Assembly (NCBI GenBank): GCA_965240325.2
Contig: OZ251227.1
Location: 1,922,001 to 1,986,000 of the forward strand
Source: Rebecca billardiae RCC1528
Taxonomy: Eukaryota; Protista; Haptophyta
Length of the DNA: 64,000 nt
Direction of reading: 5' to 3'
A model generated the notes under the pieces. It did no database searches. It was not told where the DNA came from and saw only the letters and a program-made list of their open reading frames with translations. The position numbers were made by a program, and so were the translations under genes. This document shows positions 4,014 to 20,051 of this stretch, piece by piece (within the stretch, counting starts at the first letter, position 1; each line of letters starts with the position of its first letter).

Positions 4014-5307
4014 GGCTTGTCAGACAAACCCACGCTGGCGGCAGAATGTCCGGGAAGCGCAGATCACCAACCGGACGACCCCCCTTCGTAAGGGAGGGGG
4101 GTCGTCCGGTGCGCATCGAATAGGCGTCGCGCGTGCGCGGGCTGCGGACGCCAGCCCCAACGGCGGGATGGCGCTCACTGGGCGACGCGAGGGCCCGTCT
4201 GCGCCATGCGCCCAGGGCCGCATACGAGCTTGACGGCCGTGCGCGGGCGCCTCGTGGTGGCAAGAAGACCCGATGGCAGCATTTCCGCCGCCTTGTCCAC
4301 GCTCTCGTCACCCTTTATGCGCGCAAAGACCTGCTGACTGGCACGCGCGGCTCTAGATTGGAAGGCCTGCCCGATGAGCATGATGGTCGGCACGCGTGCA
4401 CCCCTCAGGTACTCAACGGTCGGGTTCTTTCGCTTCTGTGCGAGGGGCCTGAGAGTACTAGCATCACCGCTGCGCCTTGAGCCATGCTGGCATCAGTCCG
4501 AGACCGCACGCATGTGTGACAGCTGACAGGCCAGCGAGTCACCGTGCGGCCCGGCGCCGCCAATTCAGTCAGTGCTGCTTCTACACGCATAGCCTCGACC
4601 AACAACTAGGCTAGCACATCTGTTGCATCTTCTCCCGATACCTTGCGGTCTGCTTCGTCGCTCATGCCTCGATCGCCCTACCGTGTACGAATGGCGGCGC
4701 GGCGGCGCGGCGACCGGCTCGGGACTCACAGCCGTGACCGGCCTTCTTCGTGCAGCAGTGGACACCTTCCTGCTCCAGATCGGACCACACCACGCCACCA
4801 GCGTGGGCGCACACGAGCCTGCAGACGATCGCTCACAGGTCGAGCGCACTGTCTACGGCCAGCAGGTGCCCGAGAACGCACTCTGCAGCAACATGTGCAT
4901 TGAGCTGTTCAAACAATATGCTCAACAAGCAACAAAACCGCTCATCTCCGCTGAGTACGCGCGGGCATCGTCGCGCGCGGGGGCTCGTCGATGCGCCAAC
5001 ACCTAGGCCCATCGGGCAGAGGCCGTGGCTCATCTTAATTGGGCCTCTGGCACACGCGCGCGCGCGCTCTCGCGCGGCGGGCCGCCTCCTGGACGCGTCG
5101 CGCGGAAAGTAGCCGGGCCCTGCGCGCGGCGAGGGCGGCGAGGGCGGGCGGGAGCGCGCGCGATTGAGCCCCATAGGTGTCTTGAGCCGCGCCGACCTCG
5201 CGCGCGCACCCGCAGCGGCCGTGGGTGCGCGTCCGAGCGCGCCGCGTGAGGTCGCCATCGTGCCGTGCGCGCGCGGGGCCGCCCAGCGTGGGTTTGTCTG
5301 ACAAGCC
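4014..5307. mobile_element. Non-autonomous TIR DNA transposon (1294 bp), 25-bp perfect TIRs, 3-bp CAC target duplication
   Basis: ggcttgtcagacaaacccacgctgg (4014-4038) and its reverse complement (5283-5307); cac at 4011-4013 and 5308-5310; internal hairpin ~4071-4109. Confidence 0.8.
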
Positions 5308-5364
5308 CACGGCCAGGCTCCTCCTGAAGCAGCAACGGCGGGGATCACAGCCGCAGGCGCGAGC

Positions 5365-5754
5365 ATGGACCCGCTGGTGTTCGAGGCGGATGCCGTGAAG
5401 ATCGACGAGGGCTTGCCGGACGAGGCTACGCTTCCGCTGAGCTCCATCTTTGGTCTGAATCGCCAGGAACTCGCCAGCCTTTCCGCGAGCAGCGGCGGAG
5501 ATGCCTCTGGCATCGGCCAGCGCCCGACCGACTTGGTCAAATTCGGCGAGGCCTTCACCTCCTCGATGCACACGCAGCTGCAGCGGTCGCTGCTGGAGGA
5601 CAAGCAAGATCCGTACATGCTTGAGCTGCAGGCCACCCATCCAGACCAATTCGCCAAGCACCAGCACTCTGTGCGTCAGGCAGACATGGCCATCCAGACG
5701 ATTGGCGCACTGTTGGGCTCGCTGGGTGATCCGTCGTACGCATCCTTCGCATGA
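5365..5754 (+). CDS. Hypothetical protein (129 aa)
   Basis: ATG-started ORF with protein-like composition, divergent from the DUF218 gene; no recognised motif. Confidence 0.55.
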   Translation: MDPLVFEADAVKIDEGLPDEATLPLSSIFGLNRQELASLSASSGGDASGIGQRPTDLVKFGEAFTSSMHTQLQRSLLEDKQDPYMLELQATHPDQFAKHQHSVRQADMAIQTIGALLGSLGDPSYASFA

Positions 5755-6442
5755 GCACCCATGGCAGCGTTGGTGCGCACGGCTTCACTGCGCTACACGA
5801 ATGTACTTCGCCGAACACACGTCGTCATCGACCTCACCATCCGCTGCTGGCGATTGACGTGGGGCCCTGCTCACCGCTGCACTGTAGTGACTGTGGCTTT
5901 GGACTCGGTTTTTTTGCACTGCCGTGATCTGCGCGGGGCCCTAAGCCTGCCAGGCGGCACATTCCGGCCTCTAAGCCTGCCGGGCAGCGCTACGACAGAT
6001 GATCGCGAATCTATCGCTCGCGCCAGCCGGGCCGGCGGGTGGCGCCCGGGCCCGTCAGTCAGGGCTCAGCCGCGTTCCGCAGTTGTCCGGTTGAGATATT
6101 CACTAATTCCTAACGGTCTGACCGAGCCGACCGAGGCGGGCATCGGCGTCGTGGCTCGGAGCGCCTGCTGACAGTGCTGTCACAGTCAATATCAATCATA
6201 GTGTATGCGTCATTATATCGCGTCAGCAGGCGCTTGCGATGTTATTATTCCGCCAACTCGGGCGGCGGAGCCTCCGCGAACGAACTCCGAAGCCATATAT
6301 GATTATATGTTATCTGGAATCTGCGCGGCCCCGGATTGACTTTGAGCCCGGTACTCGTTATTCATTGTACTGCTTAGTTACATATTGTCGGATGAGTCTC
6401 ACTCTCGGGCGGCGGCCACGTGCAGCGCGCCGGGTCTTATAT

Positions 6443-6635
6443 GGCGCTCGGCCGCGGCGGCATCTGCCGTCGCCGCCGCGTGCCCCAGGCCGAGGCGGTG
6501 CTCCATCCCGGCCCCGCTCCCATAGGGGGGCAGGGCTGCGGGTGGCGCACTGTCTGACCTGGACGGAAGGCGCGGACGCATTCTATGTGTCTGCTGCACT
6601 CTGAGCCTGACGCTTGTTCGTTGCTGCCACGTCGT

Positions 6636-6638
<3 letters not shown>
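6443..6638 (+). mobile_element. 5'-truncated copy of a retroposed-like fragment ending GTCGTTAA
   Basis: Near-identical to 58696-58890, same 3' end, followed by (TA)n. Confidence 0.7.
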
Positions 6639-6788
<150 letters not shown>

Positions 6789-6797
6789 TAACTTATT

Positions 6798-8090
6798 ATG
6801 GCCCGCGGTGCAGGGCGGAGCGCGCAGCGTGGAGCCCGCACCAGCGGGCCCGAACCACGTTTCAAAAAGATCTTTGATCAAGAAAAAAGGGACGGGGGGC
6901 GGCGGAAAAAAAGGGACGGGGGGCGATTTTTAGGGCTGGCGGAGACCGAGTTTCGAGTTTTTGAGATCGCATTGAGAGGTCTATCAGGCCAAAAAAAACC
7001 GCGCCCAGCTGATTCCCTTAAGTAAAGTGCGATCTGGACGTCAGCTGGACGTGACATTAGTGTAACGGTTCGTTACGAGCGAATCGTACTCGTCTTCCCG
7101 GATCGCGTGACGTCCGGACTGGGCCACATCCGGATCGTCGGAGGTGACGTGCCCCGGCACGATGGGCGATGGCGGATATGCGGGACGGCGCCTGCACGTG
7201 CCTCCGGACCCGCCTCCCGCTTGCTGCTCACGCAGTCAGCTGCGACCGTGGCGCATGATCGCAGAAGCAGTGCCGGCAGTACGGCCTGCATCAGCTAGTG
7301 CCGCGCCGTCGTGGCGCGCGCGGTACGGTTGCGCGTTTGCAGCGCTCGCCGCTCGGCGACCGGGCACGCGCGTGCGGCTCAGGTGTGTCAAATGCGGTCT
7401 CGTCGGCGCGCTTTCGCCTGCCACCTCGTGCACCCGTGCCGCCAGTTTCATCGTCTTCATGAGGACTGCTGCTGCTGTCGCCATCCGCTCTCCATCACCC
7501 CGAGTCGCCGGTCGCGCGGCGCGCGCGGTAGGCACTAGGCAGGGCGTACGGTCACTCACCCGTGCAACGGGTCAAGTGGCCAGAGTACGTCTGGTCGTTG
7601 GCTGGCACGGGCCGCAGCGCTAAAGCACCCTGCTGTCACACCCGACTCCTTCAGTACTCCGAGCTCCGCGGCACGACTCACTCGGCACGATCGCGGACGG
7701 GTCGGATCCGAGCTGATCAGCCAGAGTTGGACACAGTTTGTTTGGCAGCTACTAGTAGTAATTCCGATGCCGATGGCACGATCGCGGACGGGTCGGATCC
7801 GAGCTGATCAGCCAGTTGGACATTTGGCAGCTAGTTGTCAGACGGACGTCCGATTTGACGACCGGTGCCGGGTGCGGTCTCAGGTCCGCTGCTGTGATTG
7901 TGTGAAGTGTGAATGAGTCTCGCGGTCGCGCAGGCAGGGCGACGGTCGGACTAATATAGCTTCAGTCATCTCAGAAGTCAGAACCGACTTCAACCGGCGA
8001 ACTGCCACTACGGCGGAGAGCCGCGATTGCACGGCCACCGCGGGCCCCCAACTGCGTTGATTCTATGCAGAAAAGGACCGCGGAACGCGG

Positions 8091-8094
<4 letters not shown>
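6798..8094 (+). mobile_element. Family A element, copy A (Helitron2/Helentron-like, non-autonomous)
   Basis: 5' ATGGCCCGCGGTG; subterminal inverted copy CACCGCGGGCC at 8036-8046; terminal hairpin GACCGCG-GAA-CGCGGTC at 8076-8092, then AT; flanked by microsatellites. Confidence 0.82.
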
Positions 8095-11554: not shown

Positions 11555-13030
11555 TTATAATCCTATGCGCAAGACGCCGGAGGGCACGCGTTTCGTCGTC
11601 GTCCAGTGTACGGCACGCAGGGGCAGCAGCTGCGCCACGTGCTGTGGCGTCCTACGCGCTCCGCCTGGCTCACAGTCCATGCCGAGCCCAAGCGCGGCCG
11701 CTTGCGCACCGCATGAGAACACGCGAGCATCCGCCGTTGTGAAGAGAGCGTGGCTCCAGCTGAGCGCACAGTCGACCACACGTGTATGCACGAGTGCGCT
11801 CACCTGCTCGGGTAGCTTGCGCCGAGTGCAGCCCCCGAGGCCCAGGCGGCCATCCTCATTGCACCCAAACGTGTGCACGCTGCCGTCTGCACACACCACA
11901 GCGCTGGATGACACACTCGCGCTGGCGCGCACCGCTCGCAAGCCCCCGAGTGCTTTGATGCGCGCGGGCACGAATCTGTCAGCCCTGTCGCCGTGACCGA
12001 GCGCACCATCCTCGCCGGCGCCGAACGAGTGCACGCCACCCGTGGCGTCGACCACCAGGCTGTGTCCATCGCCAGCACTAACATGGACGGCGCGGACACA
12101 CCCGAGCGCCTCGATGCGTCGGGGCGCATGCAGGTGCTGCTCGTCGCCGTGTCCGAGCCCGCCGTCGTTGCAACTGCCACAGGAGAATACACCGCCGCAA
12201 GCCGAGAGCAGCAGCGTGTGCGCAGTGCCCGCAGCCACGCCGCCCACGCGCACGCTGTCCAGCGCCTCAACGCGCGACGGTGTTCGCCGCTCGTGGAAGT
12301 CGCCATGGCCGAGCTGGCCGCAGCTGTTGTCGCCCCAGCTGTACGCAGCGCCGGCAGCCGTGTACGCGAGACTGTAGTGCCTGCCGCTGGCGATGCCAAC
12401 GACGAGCTCGGCGACCAGCGCCTCCAGCCTCATGAACGCCCGTAGCTCAGCTGCGTCGCACACGCCAAGCTGGCCGTGTGCATTCTTGCCACACGCGTAT
12501 ACGGCGCCGGCCTCGCTGAGCGCGAGCAGGTGGGCACTTCCAGCAGCCAGCGCGCGGACGCGTACAGCCAAGAGCGAGCTGACACGCATCGGGACCAGCA
12601 CGTGGCAATCCCATCCGACATCGGGATGGCCCCAGGGCCTGCCACACGTGTGCACGCCACCGTCAGCATCGACAAACGCGCTGAAAATGCCCTCGCCCAG
12701 AAATACACCTTCTCCGCCAGCGGCGACGACGTGCGCGTGCGCGTGCGCCAGCTCGACGATATGTTCACGCGCGAATAACTCATCCGCCCACGTGCGCACA
12801 CCCGCGGGCAGGGCCGCCGGCAGCGCACGATCGTGCCCGCGCATGCGCGCGCGCTCGCGCAGGGCGTCCTCCAGCGGCGGCCCGCGGAAGAGACGCGCAG
12901 TGGCGCTGGCGGCGGCGAGGTCATGCGTGCCATCGAGATAGATGAGGATGCGCGCGATCAGCTCGGCTGGCAATTCGGGCAGGCCCCCAGCCGCCGCTTC
13001 CGACGATCGAGTTGCCGATGTCGGCGTCAT
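11555..13030 (-). CDS. F-box + RCC1 repeat (beta-propeller) protein
   Basis: LPELPAELIARILIYL F-box-like motif; repeated AG..H.L.....G.VY..G.N..GQLG units. Start at ATG 13030; the ORF-track extension runs into the foldback repeat. Confidence 0.9.
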   Translation of the reverse strand: MTPTSATRSSEAAAGGLPELPAELIARILIYLDGTHDLAAASATARLFRGPPLEDALRERARMRGHDRALPAALPAGVRTWADELFAREHIVELAHAHAHVVAAGGEGVFLGEGIFSAFVDADGGVHTCGRPWGHPDVGWDCHVLVPMRVSSLLAVRVRALAAGSAHLLALSEAGAVYACGKNAHGQLGVCDAAELRAFMRLEALVAELVVGIASGRHYSLAYTAAGAAYSWGDNSCGQLGHGDFHERRTPSRVEALDSVRVGGVAAGTAHTLLLSACGGVFSCGSCNDGGLGHGDEQHLHAPRRIEALGCVRAVHVSAGDGHSLVVDATGGVHSFGAGEDGALGHGDRADRFVPARIKALGGLRAVRASASVSSSAVVCADGSVHTFGCNEDGRLGLGGCTRRKLPEQVSALVHTRVVDCALSWSHALFTTADARVFSCGAQAAALGLGMDCEPGGARRTPQHVAQLLPLRAVHWTTTKRVPSGVLRIGL

Positions 13031-13137
13031 CGACGATGGCGGCCGCGCGGTCGGTCCGCAAGCGGGAAGGGTGACGGTTGGCAGTGCAAGACCGCAAGAG
13101 CAGGAGCCAATAAATACCCTATTGACCAAGGGCGCGA

Positions 13138-13826
13138 GAGGGGGTCGCTCGCTAAGCCCCACCCGCTCCGGCCAGCATGGCTGCCTGGCCGGCGGCGGCG
13201 TGTTCAAGCGAGCCGTAGGCCGGGAATCCACGCGCTGGCGGTGCGGTTTTGGCGGCGCAGGTGGCCTCGCAGGTCGCCTGCAGGTATGCTCAGAGCCTTA
13301 GGACAGCTTGGTGGCCCGCAAGCCCGGCTCCTTGTCGCTGCTTGCCGACTGCAAGCGATCACGCGTCGACCGTGCGGTCCCGCGTTGCACGCGGCCCAAC
13401 GTAGGGTGCTGCACATGCCAGCAGATGGTTAAGGGGGGTCGCCCGCCACGCAGACGTCCTCGGAGAGGACGTCGACCCCCGTGCGTCGCCTTGATTGGGC
13501 GTTGTCCCGCAAGGAGTCGCTGAAGGCCTGCTGCCCAGAGAGACACGGACAATGTGCAGTTCTAGCCCAAAAGTCGATATAACATTTTGAAATGCCTATG
13601 GTTGTTCGTATGTCATTGCATTGGGAAGCACGCAAGCCTGGGCTGGAGAGGTCGGGATCGAGACGACGCACGGGGGTCGACGTCCTCTCCGAGGACGTCT
13701 GCGTGGCGGGCGACCCCCCTTCACCATCTGCTAGCATGTGCAGCACCCTACGTTGGGCCGCGTGCACGCGGGATTGCACGGTCGACGCGTGATCGCGGGC
13801 GGGGGGGCTTAGCGAGCGACCCCCTC
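13138..13826. repeat. Foldback / MITE-like structure with nested inverted repeats
   Basis: 23-bp IR gagggggtcgctcgctaagcccc (13138-13160 vs 13804-13826); ~135-bp IR (~13355-13488 vs ~13664-13797); no TSD seen. Confidence 0.78.
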
Positions 13827-14281: not shown

Positions 14282-14587
14282 TCACCTCAGGCATTGTGCG
14301 CTTTGACGTGCGATCTCCGCCCGAATGCGCGTGAGCGAGTCCACGACTTCTTGTGACGCAGCGAGCTGGACAGCCTCATTGTCAAACGCCGCATCCGCTG
14401 AGGAGCCCTCGAGCGCGCGCTGTTGTTGCGCGAGCATGCGCTTGCACTCAACGATCACGGGCACGGAGCGCTCCACGTGCTCCATGACGTAATACGCGCC
14501 GAGCGCTGGTTCGTTCGCGAGCATGTGCGTGCACTCGCTCGCAAGCTGAGCGGTCTTCGCCACCTGCGACTTCGGCTGCGAGTTCAT
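14282..14587 (-). CDS. BORCS8: BORC complex subunit 8 (BORCS8/MEF2BNB)-like protein
   Basis: 101 aa; MLANEPALGAYYVMEHVERSVP matches the recalled family signature LANEPS..LY..QEHVR.S.P. Confidence 0.8.
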   Translation of the reverse strand: MNSQPKSQVAKTAQLASECTHMLANEPALGAYYVMEHVERSVPVIVECKRMLAQQQRALEGSSADAAFDNEAVQLAASQEVVDSLTRIRAEIARQSAQCLR

Positions 14588-15664: not shown

Positions 15665-18544
15665 CTACCCACCGCTCGCGTGCAGCCGCGCGCGCGCCTC
15701 CTGACGCTTCTTGATGCGCTCCTCGCGGCTCTGCCACTCGTTGATCTGCGCGAGCGCGCGCGCCGACCAGAGGCCACGCGTGTGAGCCGCACGCCGCCGC
15801 GCGTGAGCGCACGCGGCAGGGCACGTCCGCGCGCGCTCGGTTGCGCGGGCGCGGGCGCGAGCGCGCGGCCGCCGCGGCGCGGGCGCACCTCGGGCAACGG
15901 CGGGTAGCGCCTCGCCGAGAAGTTGGTCGCGTCCGCGAAGAAGGGCTTGGCGTAGGTGATGTACAGCACGGGCCTGGGCTCCGTCGACGAGTTCGCGAGG
16001 CCGCGGTGCTTCAGCCGGTAGTCGAAGGCTATGTACCCTCCGGCACCCACGGTGGGCGCGCACGGCTTGGCCGAGACGCTCCATGCGGCGTGCGAGCGCG
16101 GCACGAACTCGGTCGGCCCGTTGGCGGCGGTGAGCGGGACAAGCGGGACGAACACGTTGATGCAGTGCGGCGCAAAGTGGCGCAGCTCGGACAGGTGGTC
16201 CCCGTCCGAGTGCCACGGCTGCACCGCCGAGCCTGCGCCCAACCGCCGCGGCGCGCGCGCACGCACGGTGGCGGGTCGGGGCGGCGGCGCGCTCAGCTGT
16301 GTGCGCGCGAGGGAGTGCAGGCGGTTGCGAGTGGTTGCGCGGAGCCGCGCCAGCGGGGCGCGCGCGCGCGCGTCTCGCGCGGCGCGCACCCGGCATCGAG
16401 AGCATGCACCCGCAGTGCACGAGCTGCGCGTCCGCGCCGAGCGCCGCTCTCACGAGCTCCATCCACGGCGCGTCTCTAGCGGCGCAGCGCAGCGAGCGCT
16501 CGTGCAGCTCGGGCACTTGCACGTCGAAGCGGCCGTGGTGCCGCAGCTTGAGCTCGAGGAAGCCGCGCGAGGAGAGGTCCTCGGCGAGGTCGAGCGCGTT
16601 CACCACGCGCAGCGCGTGCGTGTACCGCGCCATCACCGCCTCCGCGCACCGCGCCACCTGCACCTCGCTCAGCGCGCGCTCGCACGTGACGTAACCGACT
16701 TGAAACAGCTCACGCGTGCGCCGCTGCGCCTCGGCCGAAAAGAGAGCGTGGCGCGCGGGCGCGGGCGCGCGCGGCGGCGGCGAGGCGCAGAGCAGCGCGG
16801 CCGAGGCGGAGGAGGGCTTGGCGCGCGGGCGCCCCGCCGCGCCGCCCGCCGCGCCCCCCGCCGCGCCGGCCGCGGGCGCGCAGCGCGCGCACACCAGCCC
16901 GGCCGCGGGCGCGTGAGGCAGCGGAGGATGGCAGCACCCCAGGTGCACCCAGCCTGCGCAGCGGGCGCAGTGCGCGCCCTCGCGCCGCTCGCAGCCGAGG
17001 CAGAGGATGCACCGCTCCGCCGGGCCCGCGCGCGCGGCGGCGCGCGCCTCCGCGGCGCGCGCGGCCACGTCGGCGCTGGGCGGCGGCAGCACGGGAGCGC
17101 TCGCCGCCGGCTGCGCGCGCGGCGCGCACGGAGCCGCCTCCTGCAGCGCCTGAGCCTTGCTGCTGCCGCCTTCGCGCGCGCTGTCGCCTGCCTTGGCCGA
17201 CGGCGCCGCGGCGACGCGCGCGCGCAGGTCGGCCTTGCGCGCCTCGGGCAGCTCGAGCCACGCGTTCGCCAGGTGCTTGCGCAGCTCCTCCCCGCCCAGC
17301 GGCTTGCGCGGGTCGGCGCCGTCCGCGCCGCCGCCGTCCGCGCCGCCGCCGTCCGCGCCGCCGCCGTCCGCGCCGCCGCCGTCCGCGTCGCCACCCGCCT
17401 GCGCGCCGCCGCCCGCCGCCGAGGGCAGCCCGGCACGCTCGCGCGCGCGCACTCTCGCCGTCTCCTCGCGGTAGAAGAGGGCGCGCGCGTGCCGCGTCTG
17501 CTGCCAGTGGGGCATGCCGTCGCCGCCCGCGCCGGGCTCGGCCTTGGGCTGCGCCGGCCCGCCCGGCTGCGGCGCGGCCGGCTGCGCGGCTGCGGGCGAG
17601 CGCGCCGCAGCGTTGCGCGCCGCCTCGAACAGCGCGGAGGTGGCGGCGGCGAGCGCGGGGTCGGCCGCGGCGAAGGGCGGGCCCGCGGCGTTCGAGCCGC
17701 CTCGCCGCCCGCCGCCGCGCTGCGCGCCCTTCTTCTCGCGCGGCTTGGCGCCGGGCGCGTCGGCGTCGGCGTCGGCGCCTCCACCCGACGGCGGCGCGGC
17801 GCATGCGGCCGCGGCGGCCGCGCCGCGCGGCGGCAAGTGGGGCGTGAGGAGGCTGAGCCGGCGGAGGGCGGCGTCGCGCTCCTTGGCACGCTTCTCCAAA
17901 GCCGCGCTCCGCGCGCCCTTCGCGTCGGCCGCCGCCTCCGCCGCCAGCGCCTCCGTCAGGATCGCCGCCTCGCCCGCGGCCAGCTTGCTCGCGAGCTCGG
18001 CGCGCTCGGACGCCGCCTGTGCGTCCTTCTCGCCGAGCGGGTGCGGGAGGGGCAGCAGGTGGGCGACGGCGGGGTCGGCCTCACGCTTGACGTACGCCGC
18101 CACCTGCTCGCGCGCCCACGCCGAGATGTCCAGACCCTTCATCGGCATCCAGCTCACGTCGTGCGGCCCTCCACGCCACTTGATCAGGTAGCACGCATCT
18201 GGGCCCGCGCCGTGCCGCTCGAGGACGCGCTCGATGATGCCCTTCTTGAGGCAGGCGGGGCAGAACCAGTCGGTCTCGGCGGGCATTCGCTCGAGCGCCG
18301 GGCGCAGGCACGCCCAGTGGAACACCTTCGTGCACCCCTCGCACACAATGTTGCGGTGGTCGGTGCACATCTGGCCGCACTTGCTGCACGGCGGGTCCCA
18401 GGACTCCTCGTCGTCGGAGGCGGCGGCGGATCCGGCGGCGCGCGTGTGACCGGCTGGTGCGTCGGTGGAGGCCGGCGCGTCGACCTCCGCCTCCGTCGTC
18501 GCGGGCTCCGCCACCGGCGCGCCCTCAACCTCGTCGTCGCCCAT
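15665..18544 (-). CDS. PHD + chromo + HMG-like + PHD + PhyH-type Fe(II)/2-oxoglutarate dioxygenase fusion (exons 18544-16390, 16232-15889, 15745-15665)
   Basis: C4HC3 PHD fingers; chromo-like IERVL..YLIKWRG..SW. Removing GT-AG introns 16389-16233 and 15888-15746 restores MPGSAVQPWHSD...INVFVPL...NGPTEFVPRSH...FDYRLKHRGLANSS..PRPVLYITY. Confidence 0.85.
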   Translation of the reverse strand: MGDDEVEGAPVAEPATTEAEVDAPASTDAPAGHTRAAGSAAASDDEESWDPPCSKCGQMCTDHRNIVCEGCTKVFHWACLRPALERMPAETDWFCPACLKKGIIERVLERHGAGPDACYLIKWRGGPHDVSWMPMKGLDISAWAREQVAAYVKREADPAVAHLLPLPHPLGEKDAQAASERAELASKLAAGEAAILTEALAAEAAADAKGARSAALEKRAKERDAALRRLSLLTPHLPPRGAAAAAACAAPPSGGGADADADAPGAKPREKKGAQRGGGRRGGSNAAGPPFAAADPALAAATSALFEAARNAAARSPAAAQPAAPQPGGPAQPKAEPGAGGDGMPHWQQTRHARALFYREETARVRARERAGLPSAAGGGAQAGGDADGGGADGGGADGGGADGGGADGADPRKPLGGEELRKHLANAWLELPEARKADLRARVAAAPSAKAGDSAREGGSSKAQALQEAAPCAPRAQPAASAPVLPPPSADVAARAAEARAAARAGPAERCILCLGCERREGAHCARCAGWVHLGCCHPPLPHAPAAGLVCARCAPAAGAAGGAAGGAAGRPRAKPSSASAALLCASPPPRAPAPARHALFSAEAQRRTRELFQVGYVTCERALSEVQVARCAEAVMARYTHALRVVNALDLAEDLSSRGFLELKLRHHGRFDVQVPELHERSLRCAARDAPWMELVRAALGADAQLVHCGCMLSMPGARRARRARARPAGAAPRNHSQPPALPRAHTAERAAAPTRHRACARAAAVGRRLGGAAVALGRGPPVRAAPLCAALHQRVRPACPAHRRQRADRVRAALARRMERLGQAVRAHRGCRRVHSLRLPAEAPRPRELVDGAQARAVHHLRQALLRGRDQLLGEALPAVARGAPAPRRPRARARARATERARTCPAACAHARRRAAHTRGLWSARALAQINEWQSREERIKKRQEARARLHASGG

Positions 18545-18746
18545 GCGCGCGTGTTCTACTGGTCGGTCTCGCGGACCGAACGGAAAACGCTCACTTGTTC
18601 ACCTCCGTCCACCAATGATCTTTTTGCAGCTCGCAGGAATGATATCATATTGTTTTTCACTTTTTCCGCCTCGGTGGCGAGCGCCTGTCATTCATTGATG
18701 GTCCTTTCGATCGGTAAACTGCTGTAGTGTGATCCGCGTTTTGACG

Positions 18747-20051
18747 ATGCGGGCCGTCGTGATTGCGGCGATCTCGGCGCTGTGCAGCTGCGCGCTGCCG
18801 CCCGCGGGGGCTCACGTGCCGGCGCGTGGGCGGGACACGCCAGTACGCGCGACACCGCGCTCGCCGCGCGCGCGCGCCCGAGCTCGCACCTCCGACGAGG
18901 CGTGGATGCACCGTGCGGTCGAGCTCGCAGAGCGAGGGCGGCGCACGGCCGCGCCCAACCCGTGGGTGGGCTGCGTGGTCGTGGGCGCGGACGGCGAGAG
19001 CGTGCTGGCGGAGGGATACCACATCGCACCCGGCCGCCCGCACGCCGAGGCCGCCGCGCTCGCCGACGCGGCAGCGCGCGGCGTGTCCGCGCATGCGCTC
19101 GCGGGCGCCACTCTTTACTGCACGCTCGAGCCGTGCCACGCAGGCCCGGGCAAGCGCACGCCGCCGTGCGACGAGGCGATCGTGCGCGCCGGGATCAAGC
19201 GCGTCGTCGTCGCGCAGCAAGACCCGGACCCGCTCTTCGGCGGCGCGGGCCTCGCCACGCTGCGCGCGGCGGGCATCGACGTGTGCGTGGGCGCGGGCGC
19301 GGCCGCGGCCGCCGCGTCGCTGGAGCCGTACCTGCACCAGCGCCGGACGCGGCGGCCGTTCTGCGTGGTGAAGACGGCCGTGAGCATCGACGGCGCGATC
19401 GGCTGCGCGGACGGCTCGTCCCAGTGGATCACGGGCGAGGCGGCGCGCGCGGACGCGCACGAGCTGCGCGCGCTCTCACACGCGATCGTTGTCGGCTCAG
19501 GCACGGCGCTGCGCGACAGGCCGAGGCTCAACGTGCGCGCGCAGGGGGCGGCGTGGGCGGCGCGCGGCGCGGAGGGAGCCGACGCGCCGCCGCCGCTGCG
19601 CGTGCTGCTCGACGCGCGCGGGCGCGTGCGCGAGGGCCCGCTGCTCGACCCCAGCATCGGCCCCACGCTCGTCTTCACCTCGGCGGCGTGCGACCCGGCC
19701 GCGCTGAGCGCGTGGGCGGCGGCCGGTGTGCAGTCGCAGGTGGTGGCGGCGGACGAGGCGCGCGGCGGGCTGGAGCTGGGCGCGGTGCTCGACGCGCTGG
19801 GCGAGCGGCGCATCATCCAGGTGATGTTCGAGGGCGGGCCCACGCTGCACAGCCGGCTGCTCGAGGCCGGCCTCGCCGACCGCCTCCAGCTGTACGTAGG
19901 GAACTGCCTGCTCGGCGCCGGCTCGCAGCCGTGGCTGAGCGCACCGATCGCGCGCACGATCGCTGACAAGCAGCTGTGGTCGCTGCGCGACGTGCGCAGG
20001 CTCGGGCAGGACGTGCGCCTGGTGTACGGGCGTGCCACGGGCGACGCGTGA
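18747..20051 (+). CDS. ribD: Bifunctional riboflavin biosynthesis deaminase/reductase RibD with probable bipartite plastid-targeting presequence
   Basis: PNPWVGCVVV, HAE, TLEPC...TPPC zinc motifs; SIDG..SQWITG..AR, VGSGT..D.P.L, EGG reductase motifs; hydrophobic N-terminus followed by an Arg-rich segment. Confidence 0.95.
   Translation: MRAVVIAAISALCSCALPPAGAHVPARGRDTPVRATPRSPRARARARTSDEAWMHRAVELAERGRRTAAPNPWVGCVVVGADGESVLAEGYHIAPGRPHAEAAALADAAARGVSAHALAGATLYCTLEPCHAGPGKRTPPCDEAIVRAGIKRVVVAQQDPDPLFGGAGLATLRAAGIDVCVGAGAAAAAASLEPYLHQRRTRRPFCVVKTAVSIDGAIGCADGSSQWITGEAARADAHELRALSHAIVVGSGTALRDRPRLNVRAQGAAWAARGAEGADAPPPLRVLLDARGRVREGPLLDPSIGPTLVFTSAACDPAALSAWAAAGVQSQVVAADEARGGLELGAVLDALGERRIIQVMFEGGPTLHSRLLEAGLADRLQLYVGNCLLGAGSQPWLSAPIARTIADKQLWSLRDVRRLGQDVRLVYGRATGDA

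Follow-up and report, generated by a model that had tools for sequence, protein, structure and literature searches.

The stretch analysed here, called the window, comprises 64,000 nucleotides of contig OZ251227.1 (positions 1,922,001 to 1,986,000) of the haptophyte Rebecca billardiae RCC1528. On its minus strand, an open reading frame (ORF) between positions 15665 and 18544 encodes 959 amino acids (aa) when read straight through; comparison with related proteins resolves it into a gene of three exons, which would encode a protein of 859 aa. From the sequence, we show that this single gene encodes chromatin reader domains together with a KanJ-like PhyH domain whose predicted catalytic residues are all present. 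That the product would be a chromatin-tethered 2-oxoglutarate (2OG) oxygenase is well supported by the comparisons described below.

An orthologue of the gene was obtained by a word search seeded with the part of PhyH that exon 1 encodes, its N-terminal half. This search returned one protein, KFE25_010973 of Diacronema lutheri (P0001; E 4.9e-28), which consists of 1025 aa and contains PHD twice, a stretch resembling HMG_box_2, and PhyH (48.3 bits). Its names are automatic only (hypothetical protein; "PHD-type domain-containing protein" in UniRef), and the protein is uncharacterised. P0001 has the same domain order as the window gene, and the two proteins are 65% identical over the PHD-chromo module and 53-74% identical over PhyH. 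Unlike the window gene, it has a longer N-terminus, an insert within the chromodomain, and an HMG-like stretch that is uninterrupted.

The three exons are 2155, 344 and 81 nucleotides long (Table 1), and the GC content across the gene is 72-85%. The original prediction, made from the sequence of the locus, had proposed a 157-bp GT-AG intron, and this intron is borne out by the relatives: its removal joins ..MLSMPG to SAVQPWHSDGDH.., and the same junction is contiguous in orthologues. The junction (..LSMPG directly followed by SAVQPWHSD..) lies inside a conserved block, LSLPGS..Q.WHSDG.H, that is unbroken in P0001, in the transcript-derived ORF P0034, and in 20 further family members. The gene structure as a whole, however, was incomplete in that prediction: another intron, 143 bp long and likewise with GT-AG ends, had been missed. 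Exon 2 ends in ..RRYPPLPE (position 15889) with GT immediately following, so that ..PPLPE is continued by INEWQSREER.. of exon 3; this segment aligns with ..VAEWHGREER.. of P0001 and ..VAEWQGGDER.. of P0034, both of which stand directly after ..PPLPE. P0001, P0034 (from MMETSP) and the Logan ORF P0079 are continuous over both predicted junctions. Because of the second intron, the final ~240 residues of the 959-aa ORF are mostly intron and out-of-frame exon; since the two introns sum to 300 bp, the stop codon originally quoted is still right. A C-terminal helix is also present in the predicted model of the P0001 domain. An Rfam scan of the locus gave no match.

Table 1. Features of the PHD-PhyH gene and its neighbours (positions in the window)
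Feature	Position	Strand	Remarks
Exon 1	16390..18544	-	ATG at 18544; 718 codons + 1 base; continuous ORF; PHD1, chromodomain, low-complexity linkers, HMG-like stretch, PHD2, PhyH N-terminal half
PHD finger 1	18251..18388	-	aa 53-98; full-length Pfam PHD match, profile positions 1-47
Chromodomain	18083..18235	-	aa 104-154; directly after PHD1
HMG-like stretch	17204..17512	-	aa ~345-447; split by (GGGAD)n tract
(GGGAD)n tract	17317-17421		in-frame 15-bp tandem repeat, 7.1 copies
PHD finger 2	16880..17011	-	aa 512-555; adjoins PhyH domain upstream; second Pfam PHD stretch
PhyH N-terminal half	16390..16747	-	helical region and first strands; 53% identity to P0001 across aligned block
Intron 1	16233..16389	-	157 bp, GT..AG, phase 1
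Exon 2	15889..16232	-	PhyH C-terminal half; carries all predicted metal and 2OG ligands
HxD iron ligands, predicted (WHSD)	16204..16212	-	His 16210-16212, Asp 16204-16206; aligned with KanJ H.D
Distal His (KHRG)	16006-16008	-	aligned with KanJ HRG...RP
RP-motif Arg	15973-15975	-	aligned with KanJ HRG...RP
Intron 2	15746..15888	-	143 bp, GT..AG, phase 0; AG at 15747-15746
Exon 3	15665..15745	-	26 codons + TAG stop (15667-15665); short basic C-terminal helix
RibD gene	18729-20051	+	deaminase + RibD_C reductase
BORCS8-like ORF	14282-14587	-
RCC1-repeat protein	11555-13231	-

On this comparative evidence, the reality of both splices is supported. The model could be wrong in one of two ways, the locus being either two neighbouring genes or a decaying pseudogene with seemingly spliceable frames; the splices were placed by sequence comparison, and long ORFs arise in many frames of DNA as GC-rich as this. 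We consider such an error very improbable, given that no stop codon interrupts exon 1 between PHD1 and the N-terminal part of PhyH, that removal of the two GT..AG introns restores exact colinearity with three relatives, that the orthologue is 53-74% identical in the catalytic domain and 65% in the PHD-chromo part, and that the catalytic residues are all kept. Exon 1 as a whole is colinear with P0001, and its PHD2-PhyH part with P0152, a 483-aa protein with PHD and PhyH that is a cluster mate of P0034. Transcripts showing two separate genes had been named at the outset as an outcome that would speak against the fusion; instead, relatives carry readers and PhyH in one protein, and in the Telonema protein P0008 and the pavlovophyte-like P0152 the PHD and PhyH domains are joined on single transcript-derived ORFs, which argues that reader and oxygenase are one protein rather than two. 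Note that the fusion does not depend on the splicing, because the readers and the first PhyH half share one uninterrupted exon.

Two PHD fingers and the N-terminal half of a PhyH fold had been recognised in one ORF by the original prediction, and each of them gives a significant match. Pfam PHD (PF00628), the family of Cys4-His-Cys3 fingers, matches two stretches with E 1e-8 and a score of 35.5 bits, above the cut-off of 24, which assigns the protein to this family. Among sequences in the PDB, PHD1 is nearest to WSTF (E 3.9e-9), followed by KMT2D, UHRF1, ATXR5, PHD1 of KDM5B, BAZ2A/B and AIRE (to 1e-6), and it is also near PHD1 of KDM5A. PHD2 is nearest to the PHD finger of ORC1b (E 5.8e-4), PHF21A/BHC80 (E 3e-3) and CHD4; a PHD finger likewise stands just upstream of PhyH in P0001, P0152 and P0008. 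Several PHD fingers of these kinds (the UHRF1, BHC80, KDM5B PHD1, AIRE and BAZ2 types) bind the unmodified N-terminus of histone H3, which gives a lead to what PHD1 and PHD2 may read. As a separate observation on this histone, the H3 genes found in the genome (L018 around 1318, plus strand; L019 around 2013 and L020 around 1981, both minus strand) appear to be split by an intron after ..GGKAPRKQ (about codon 20), within the region coding for the tail.

The segment directly after PHD1, earlier described as chromo-like, is by sequence similarity probably a chromodomain homologue. It matches PDB sequences of the cpSRP43 chromodomains (E 1.2e-5) and of CBX1 and CBX5 (E 4e-4 to 7e-4), although its score against Pfam Chromo (PF00385; E 0.2, 12 bits) is below the cut-off of 25.1. 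The three-aromatic cage for methyl-lysine is incomplete: in the alignment with CBX1, only Trp (of KW) is kept, and the other two positions read as Gly. A model of the PHD-chromo module from a two-sequence alignment had a predicted local distance difference test score (pLDDT) of 43.8, too poor for fold comparison.

For the interrupted HMG-like segment of the original prediction, the interruption by the (GGGAD)n tract is confirmed, whereas the HMG identity is not: the stretch in the window has no Pfam match to an HMG box (PF00505/PF09011) at E up to 1. Its counterpart in the orthologue reaches E 0.04 with Pfam HMG_box_2, below the cut-off, and E 0.3-0.5 with HMG boxes in the PDB, and a BLASTP comparison of the window copy with the orthologue copy gave nothing significant. 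The stretch may be a degenerate HMG-like linker and is statistically unsupported as an HMG box.

The catalytic domain is compact (~240 aa) and divided between the first two exons. The source assembly (72 Mb, 41 contigs) was searched in six frames with the family profile, and both pieces were matched, at E 1.1e-34 (exon 1, profile positions 3-113) and E 5.2e-54 (exon 2). The N-terminal half alone gives no match to the PDB with phmmer and is recognised through the family alignment only. The exon 2 frame belongs to Pfam PhyH (PF05721; E 4.9e-10), with a score of 40.5 bits where the cut-off is 22; it is 74% identical to P0001, and by itself matches the kanamycin B dioxygenase KanJ (E 2.8e-9), with H.D, HRG and RP aligned. 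The HxD...H...R set read earlier as WHSD, KHRG and PRP is complete by this alignment, all four residues being present. The distal His is predicted to be the third iron ligand and the Arg to bind the C5-carboxylate of 2OG. Conservation of these positions is nearly invariant: His and Asp of HxD occur in 96 of 96 family domains, and the distal His and the Arg in 95 of 96 each. The family domains are predicted to be active enzymes of the hydroxylase type rather than halogenases.

To place the domain among the 2OG oxygenases, we used a profile (A1) built from 22 family domains and the two window pieces. Against the PDB, this profile finds KanJ first (E 1.1e-23) and then DhiD, FtmOx1, TlxI, AndA, EctD, SptF and GriE; no JmjC, TET or AlkB chain is among the 55 matches. 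At the Pfam level, the gene has no match to JmjC, JmjC_2, Cupin_8, TET/JBP or AlkB at E up to 1. The fold was modelled on the orthologue domain (P0001:780-1025), with A1 as the alignment, standing in for the window domain. The AlphaFold model, a double-stranded beta-helix most like those of solved PhyH-family enzymes, had a pLDDT of 90.4 and a predicted template modelling score of 0.86, and its top Foldseek match is again KanJ (E 1e-15, template modelling score ~0.7, ~24% identity), followed by AndA, TlxJ, DhiD (8zyb) and SptF; the 50 Foldseek matches listed include no TET/JBP or AlkB structure. By profile and by predicted fold, therefore, the catalytic domain is of the PhyH/KanJ type and not JmjC, TET or AlkB. 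Resolution to a known JmjC or TET family, which had been named as a refuting result, did not occur, and the original proposal of a candidate non-JmjC chromatin oxygenase is strengthened at the hedged level at which it was made.

The catalytic clade occurs in several groups of protists. A search with the catalytic domain of P0001, at full-protein length, yielded 31 multi-domain relatives, in which the fusion partners detected by Pfam are PHD (the commonest), PHDvar_NSD, HMG_box (P0005, P0010), MBD (P0007, E 9.4e-9), two Chromo domains (P0019), MSL3-chromo/Tudor-knot (P0009) and SET (P0025, P0026). The named sources are the haptophyte Diacronema, the pelagophyte Chrysophaeum, the diatoms Pseudo-nitzschia and Thalassiosira, Telonema, and Picozoa, and the rhizarian Mataza is the source of a shorter family sequence. 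At domain length, a profile word search added 169 further proteins, many of them on short contigs and probably fragments. Bacteria also contribute members: P0070 comes from Nannocystaceae, and others, 34-38% identical, come from genomes of Myxococcota or Polyangia.

A quick maximum-likelihood tree was computed from 96 domains, with midpoint rooting for drawing only; many of its "short" rows are unreliable as evidence of stand-alone genes. The PHD, chromo, HMG, MBD and MSL3-chromo fusions all fall inside one clade of 38 rows (Shimodaira-Hasegawa-like approximate likelihood ratio test support 92), together with long diatom proteins, so that the architecture search proposed earlier finds one catalytic clade joined to these modules in distant protists. 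The SET fusions are placed in a separate, sister clade, which argues that they arose independently. They are marine metagenome proteins (P0025, with a cluster of 14 members, and P0026), and, should PhyH/KanJ oxygenases act on chromatin marks, they would hint at a coupling of writer and eraser. The myxobacterial sequences and the stand-alone paralogues of the source genome lie outside the fused clade.

Several other loci bear on the family. The source genome contains at least a dozen PhyH-like loci (16 matches listed). One is a close stand-alone paralogue, a 332-aa ORF (L011, 5599-6597, plus strand; family profile E 3e-54) whose clade differs from that of the window gene, and a second stand-alone paralogue is found in L006 (1198-2100, minus strand). 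In L012 (G000:C10:3181000-3190999; 5009-8092, minus strand), a frame of 1028 aa combines JmjC/Cupin_8 (E 1.5e-13) and PhyH (E 9.5e-17), that is, two distinct 2OG oxygenase domains together. The closest bacterial relatives (L013 2384-11015 and L014 2173-11194) are from metagenome-assembled genomes of marine Myxococcota/Polyangia, at 36-38% identity. Their context is conserved, with a gene for a Ser/Thr kinase on one side of the PhyH gene and methylmalonyl-CoA mutase genes on the other, and gives no functional clue. The PhyH domain of L014 is the C-terminal part of a longer ORF (890 aa), in which Pfam matches nothing over the first ~640 aa.

Within the window, the PHD-PhyH gene is flanked on its 5' side by a divergent RibD gene (E 2e-37), whose start is 184 bp from the ATG; this arrangement suggests a short promoter region shared by the two genes. 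The two downstream neighbours, which lie on the same strand as the PHD-PhyH gene, are a BORCS8-like ORF, matched at E 4.5e-15, and a gene for a protein with RCC1 repeats, matched at E 3e-65.

As to function, we propose a nuclear Fe(II)/2OG dioxygenase that is docked on chromatin and oxidises a chromatin substrate, preferably a histone side chain, and we regard the balance between this proposal being right and being wrong as about even. The protein would be nuclear, with the PHD fingers and the chromodomain docking on nucleosomes, the PHD fingers through H3 tails; the PhyH domain, using O2 and 2OG, would then oxidise a C-H bond of the chromatin substrate. The preferred target would be a side-chain carbon of a histone next to nitrogen, akin to the attack of KanJ on an amine-bearing carbon, and possible outcomes would include demethylation of N-methyl-lysine or N-methyl-arginine, lysine hydroxylation, and oxidative deamination. 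The reaction of KanJ is given as the C2' oxidative deamination of kanamycin B in PMC13707489, which cites Sucipto et al. 2012 for it. A histone substrate is preferred because PHD is the commonest partner, because SET is fused in the sister clade, and because KanJ attacks an amine-bearing carbon.

Several points weigh against this proposal. The family is known from sequence, activity being predicted for every member, and the splices and gene model of R. billardiae were drawn from the sequences of relatives. The specificity assigned to the PHD fingers comes from nearest-neighbour similarity and from the general properties of such fingers, and methyl-lysine reading by the chromodomain is doubtful because two of the three cage aromatics are missing. 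All characterised relatives in the PDB list act on small molecules, and the fold is in itself no pointer to macromolecules, because PhyH paralogues without readers stand alone in the same genome and bacterial proteins also belong to the wider family. Finally, the MBD and HMG fusions in relatives would fit a DNA substrate equally well.

This last point leads to an alternative in which the enzyme is tethered to chromatin but oxidises bases of DNA or RNA, such as methylated ones, in the manner of TET/JBP or AlkB, the PHD and chromo modules serving for positioning only. Same-clade relatives indeed carry MBD (P0007) and true HMG boxes (P0005, P0010), and within the fused clade the catalytic domain is less acidic than elsewhere in the family (median isoelectric point 6.9 to 8.9 versus 5.6), a difference too weak to settle the substrate. 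The PDB profile list, however, contains no nucleic-acid oxygenase, and none is known to have a PhyH-type domain. MBD and HMG domains are also frequent in histone-modifying complexes, while PHD, the commonest partner, is a reader of histone tails, and the SET domain of the sister clade is a protein methyltransferase domain. We therefore judge a nucleic-acid substrate unlikely.

Alternatively, the readers might provide location only, for a small-molecule enzyme parked on chromatin (acting, for example, on a polyamine or a chromatin-bound amine) or for a sensor of O2, 2OG or iron. The characterised relatives KanJ, FtmOx1, AndA, EctD and GriE are all small-molecule enzymes, and stand-alone paralogues occur in the same genome (L011, L006) as well as in bacteria. 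These paralogues belong to other clades of the tree, however, and it is difficult to see why a metabolic enzyme should have been fused repeatedly, in distant lineages, to at least six kinds of chromatin module. We hold this alternative to be quite improbable.

If chromatin oxidation is the correct reading, its consequence extends beyond one gene. To our knowledge, every enzyme so far described that erases or writes chromatin marks by oxidation does so with a JmjC, TET/JBP or AlkB domain. What is new here is a reader-fused 2OG oxygenase whose catalytic family is not known to act on chromatin, and these proteins of marine protists could represent a novel type of enzyme that modifies chromatin. 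More broadly, and with some hesitation since we place it a little short of even, PhyH/KanJ oxygenases might form a further undescribed class beside the three established ones, which would erase or write a histone or DNA mark and would span haptophytes, stramenopiles, Telonemia, Picozoa and Rhizaria. The earlier description of the protein as possibly undescribed stands in one respect and needs correction in another. A search of full-text literature, which did not extend to reviews of chromatin domain architectures in subscription journals and so leaves an earlier mention possible, turned up no account of a fusion between PhyH and chromatin domains. The gene itself is no one-off, however: since the family is already present, unremarked, in public databases, the window gene is one member of an uncharacterised family.

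If the reading is true, chromatin biology would gain an enzyme class in the form of a conserved, intact PhyH oxygenase that is joined to PHD, chromo, MBD, HMG and SET modules. Among its carriers are haptophytes and diatoms, which are ecologically dominant groups of marine phytoplankton, as well as protists that branch deeply. Where the epigenetic toolkit of a lineage is poorly known, such an enzyme could account for marks or for their erasure. This proposal is testable, because homologues occur in genetically tractable diatoms and the catalytic domain models with high confidence.

Among known systems, TET/JBP and AlkB enzymes resemble the window protein in having an Fe(II)/2OG double-stranded beta-helix and, in some cases, in being fused to DNA- or chromatin-binding modules; they are a separate family, however, and neither the profile search nor the fold search groups the window domain with them. 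A parallel in architecture is provided by the JmjC demethylases (KDM5; PHF8/PHF2/KDM7), which likewise combine PHD or chromo readers and an Fe(II)/2OG oxygenase in one polypeptide: KDM5 has PHD fingers and JmjC, and PHF8/PHF2/KDM7 has PHD and JmjC. The window protein differs from them in that its catalytic domain has no JmjC or Cupin_8 match and its activity is a prediction. By profile and by predicted fold, the nearest solved relative is KanJ of Streptomyces kanamyceticus (PDB 6s0r, 7cl2), which is a member of the PhyH family and has the motifs H.D..HL, VPL.D...NG.TE..P.SH and RL.HRG..N.S..RP in common with the window domain. KanJ, at ~24% identity, is a stand-alone bacterial enzyme of an antibiotic pathway, ~280 aa long, with an aminoglycoside substrate, whereas the window protein carries its PhyH domain at the end of an 859-aa chain with predicted histone readers.

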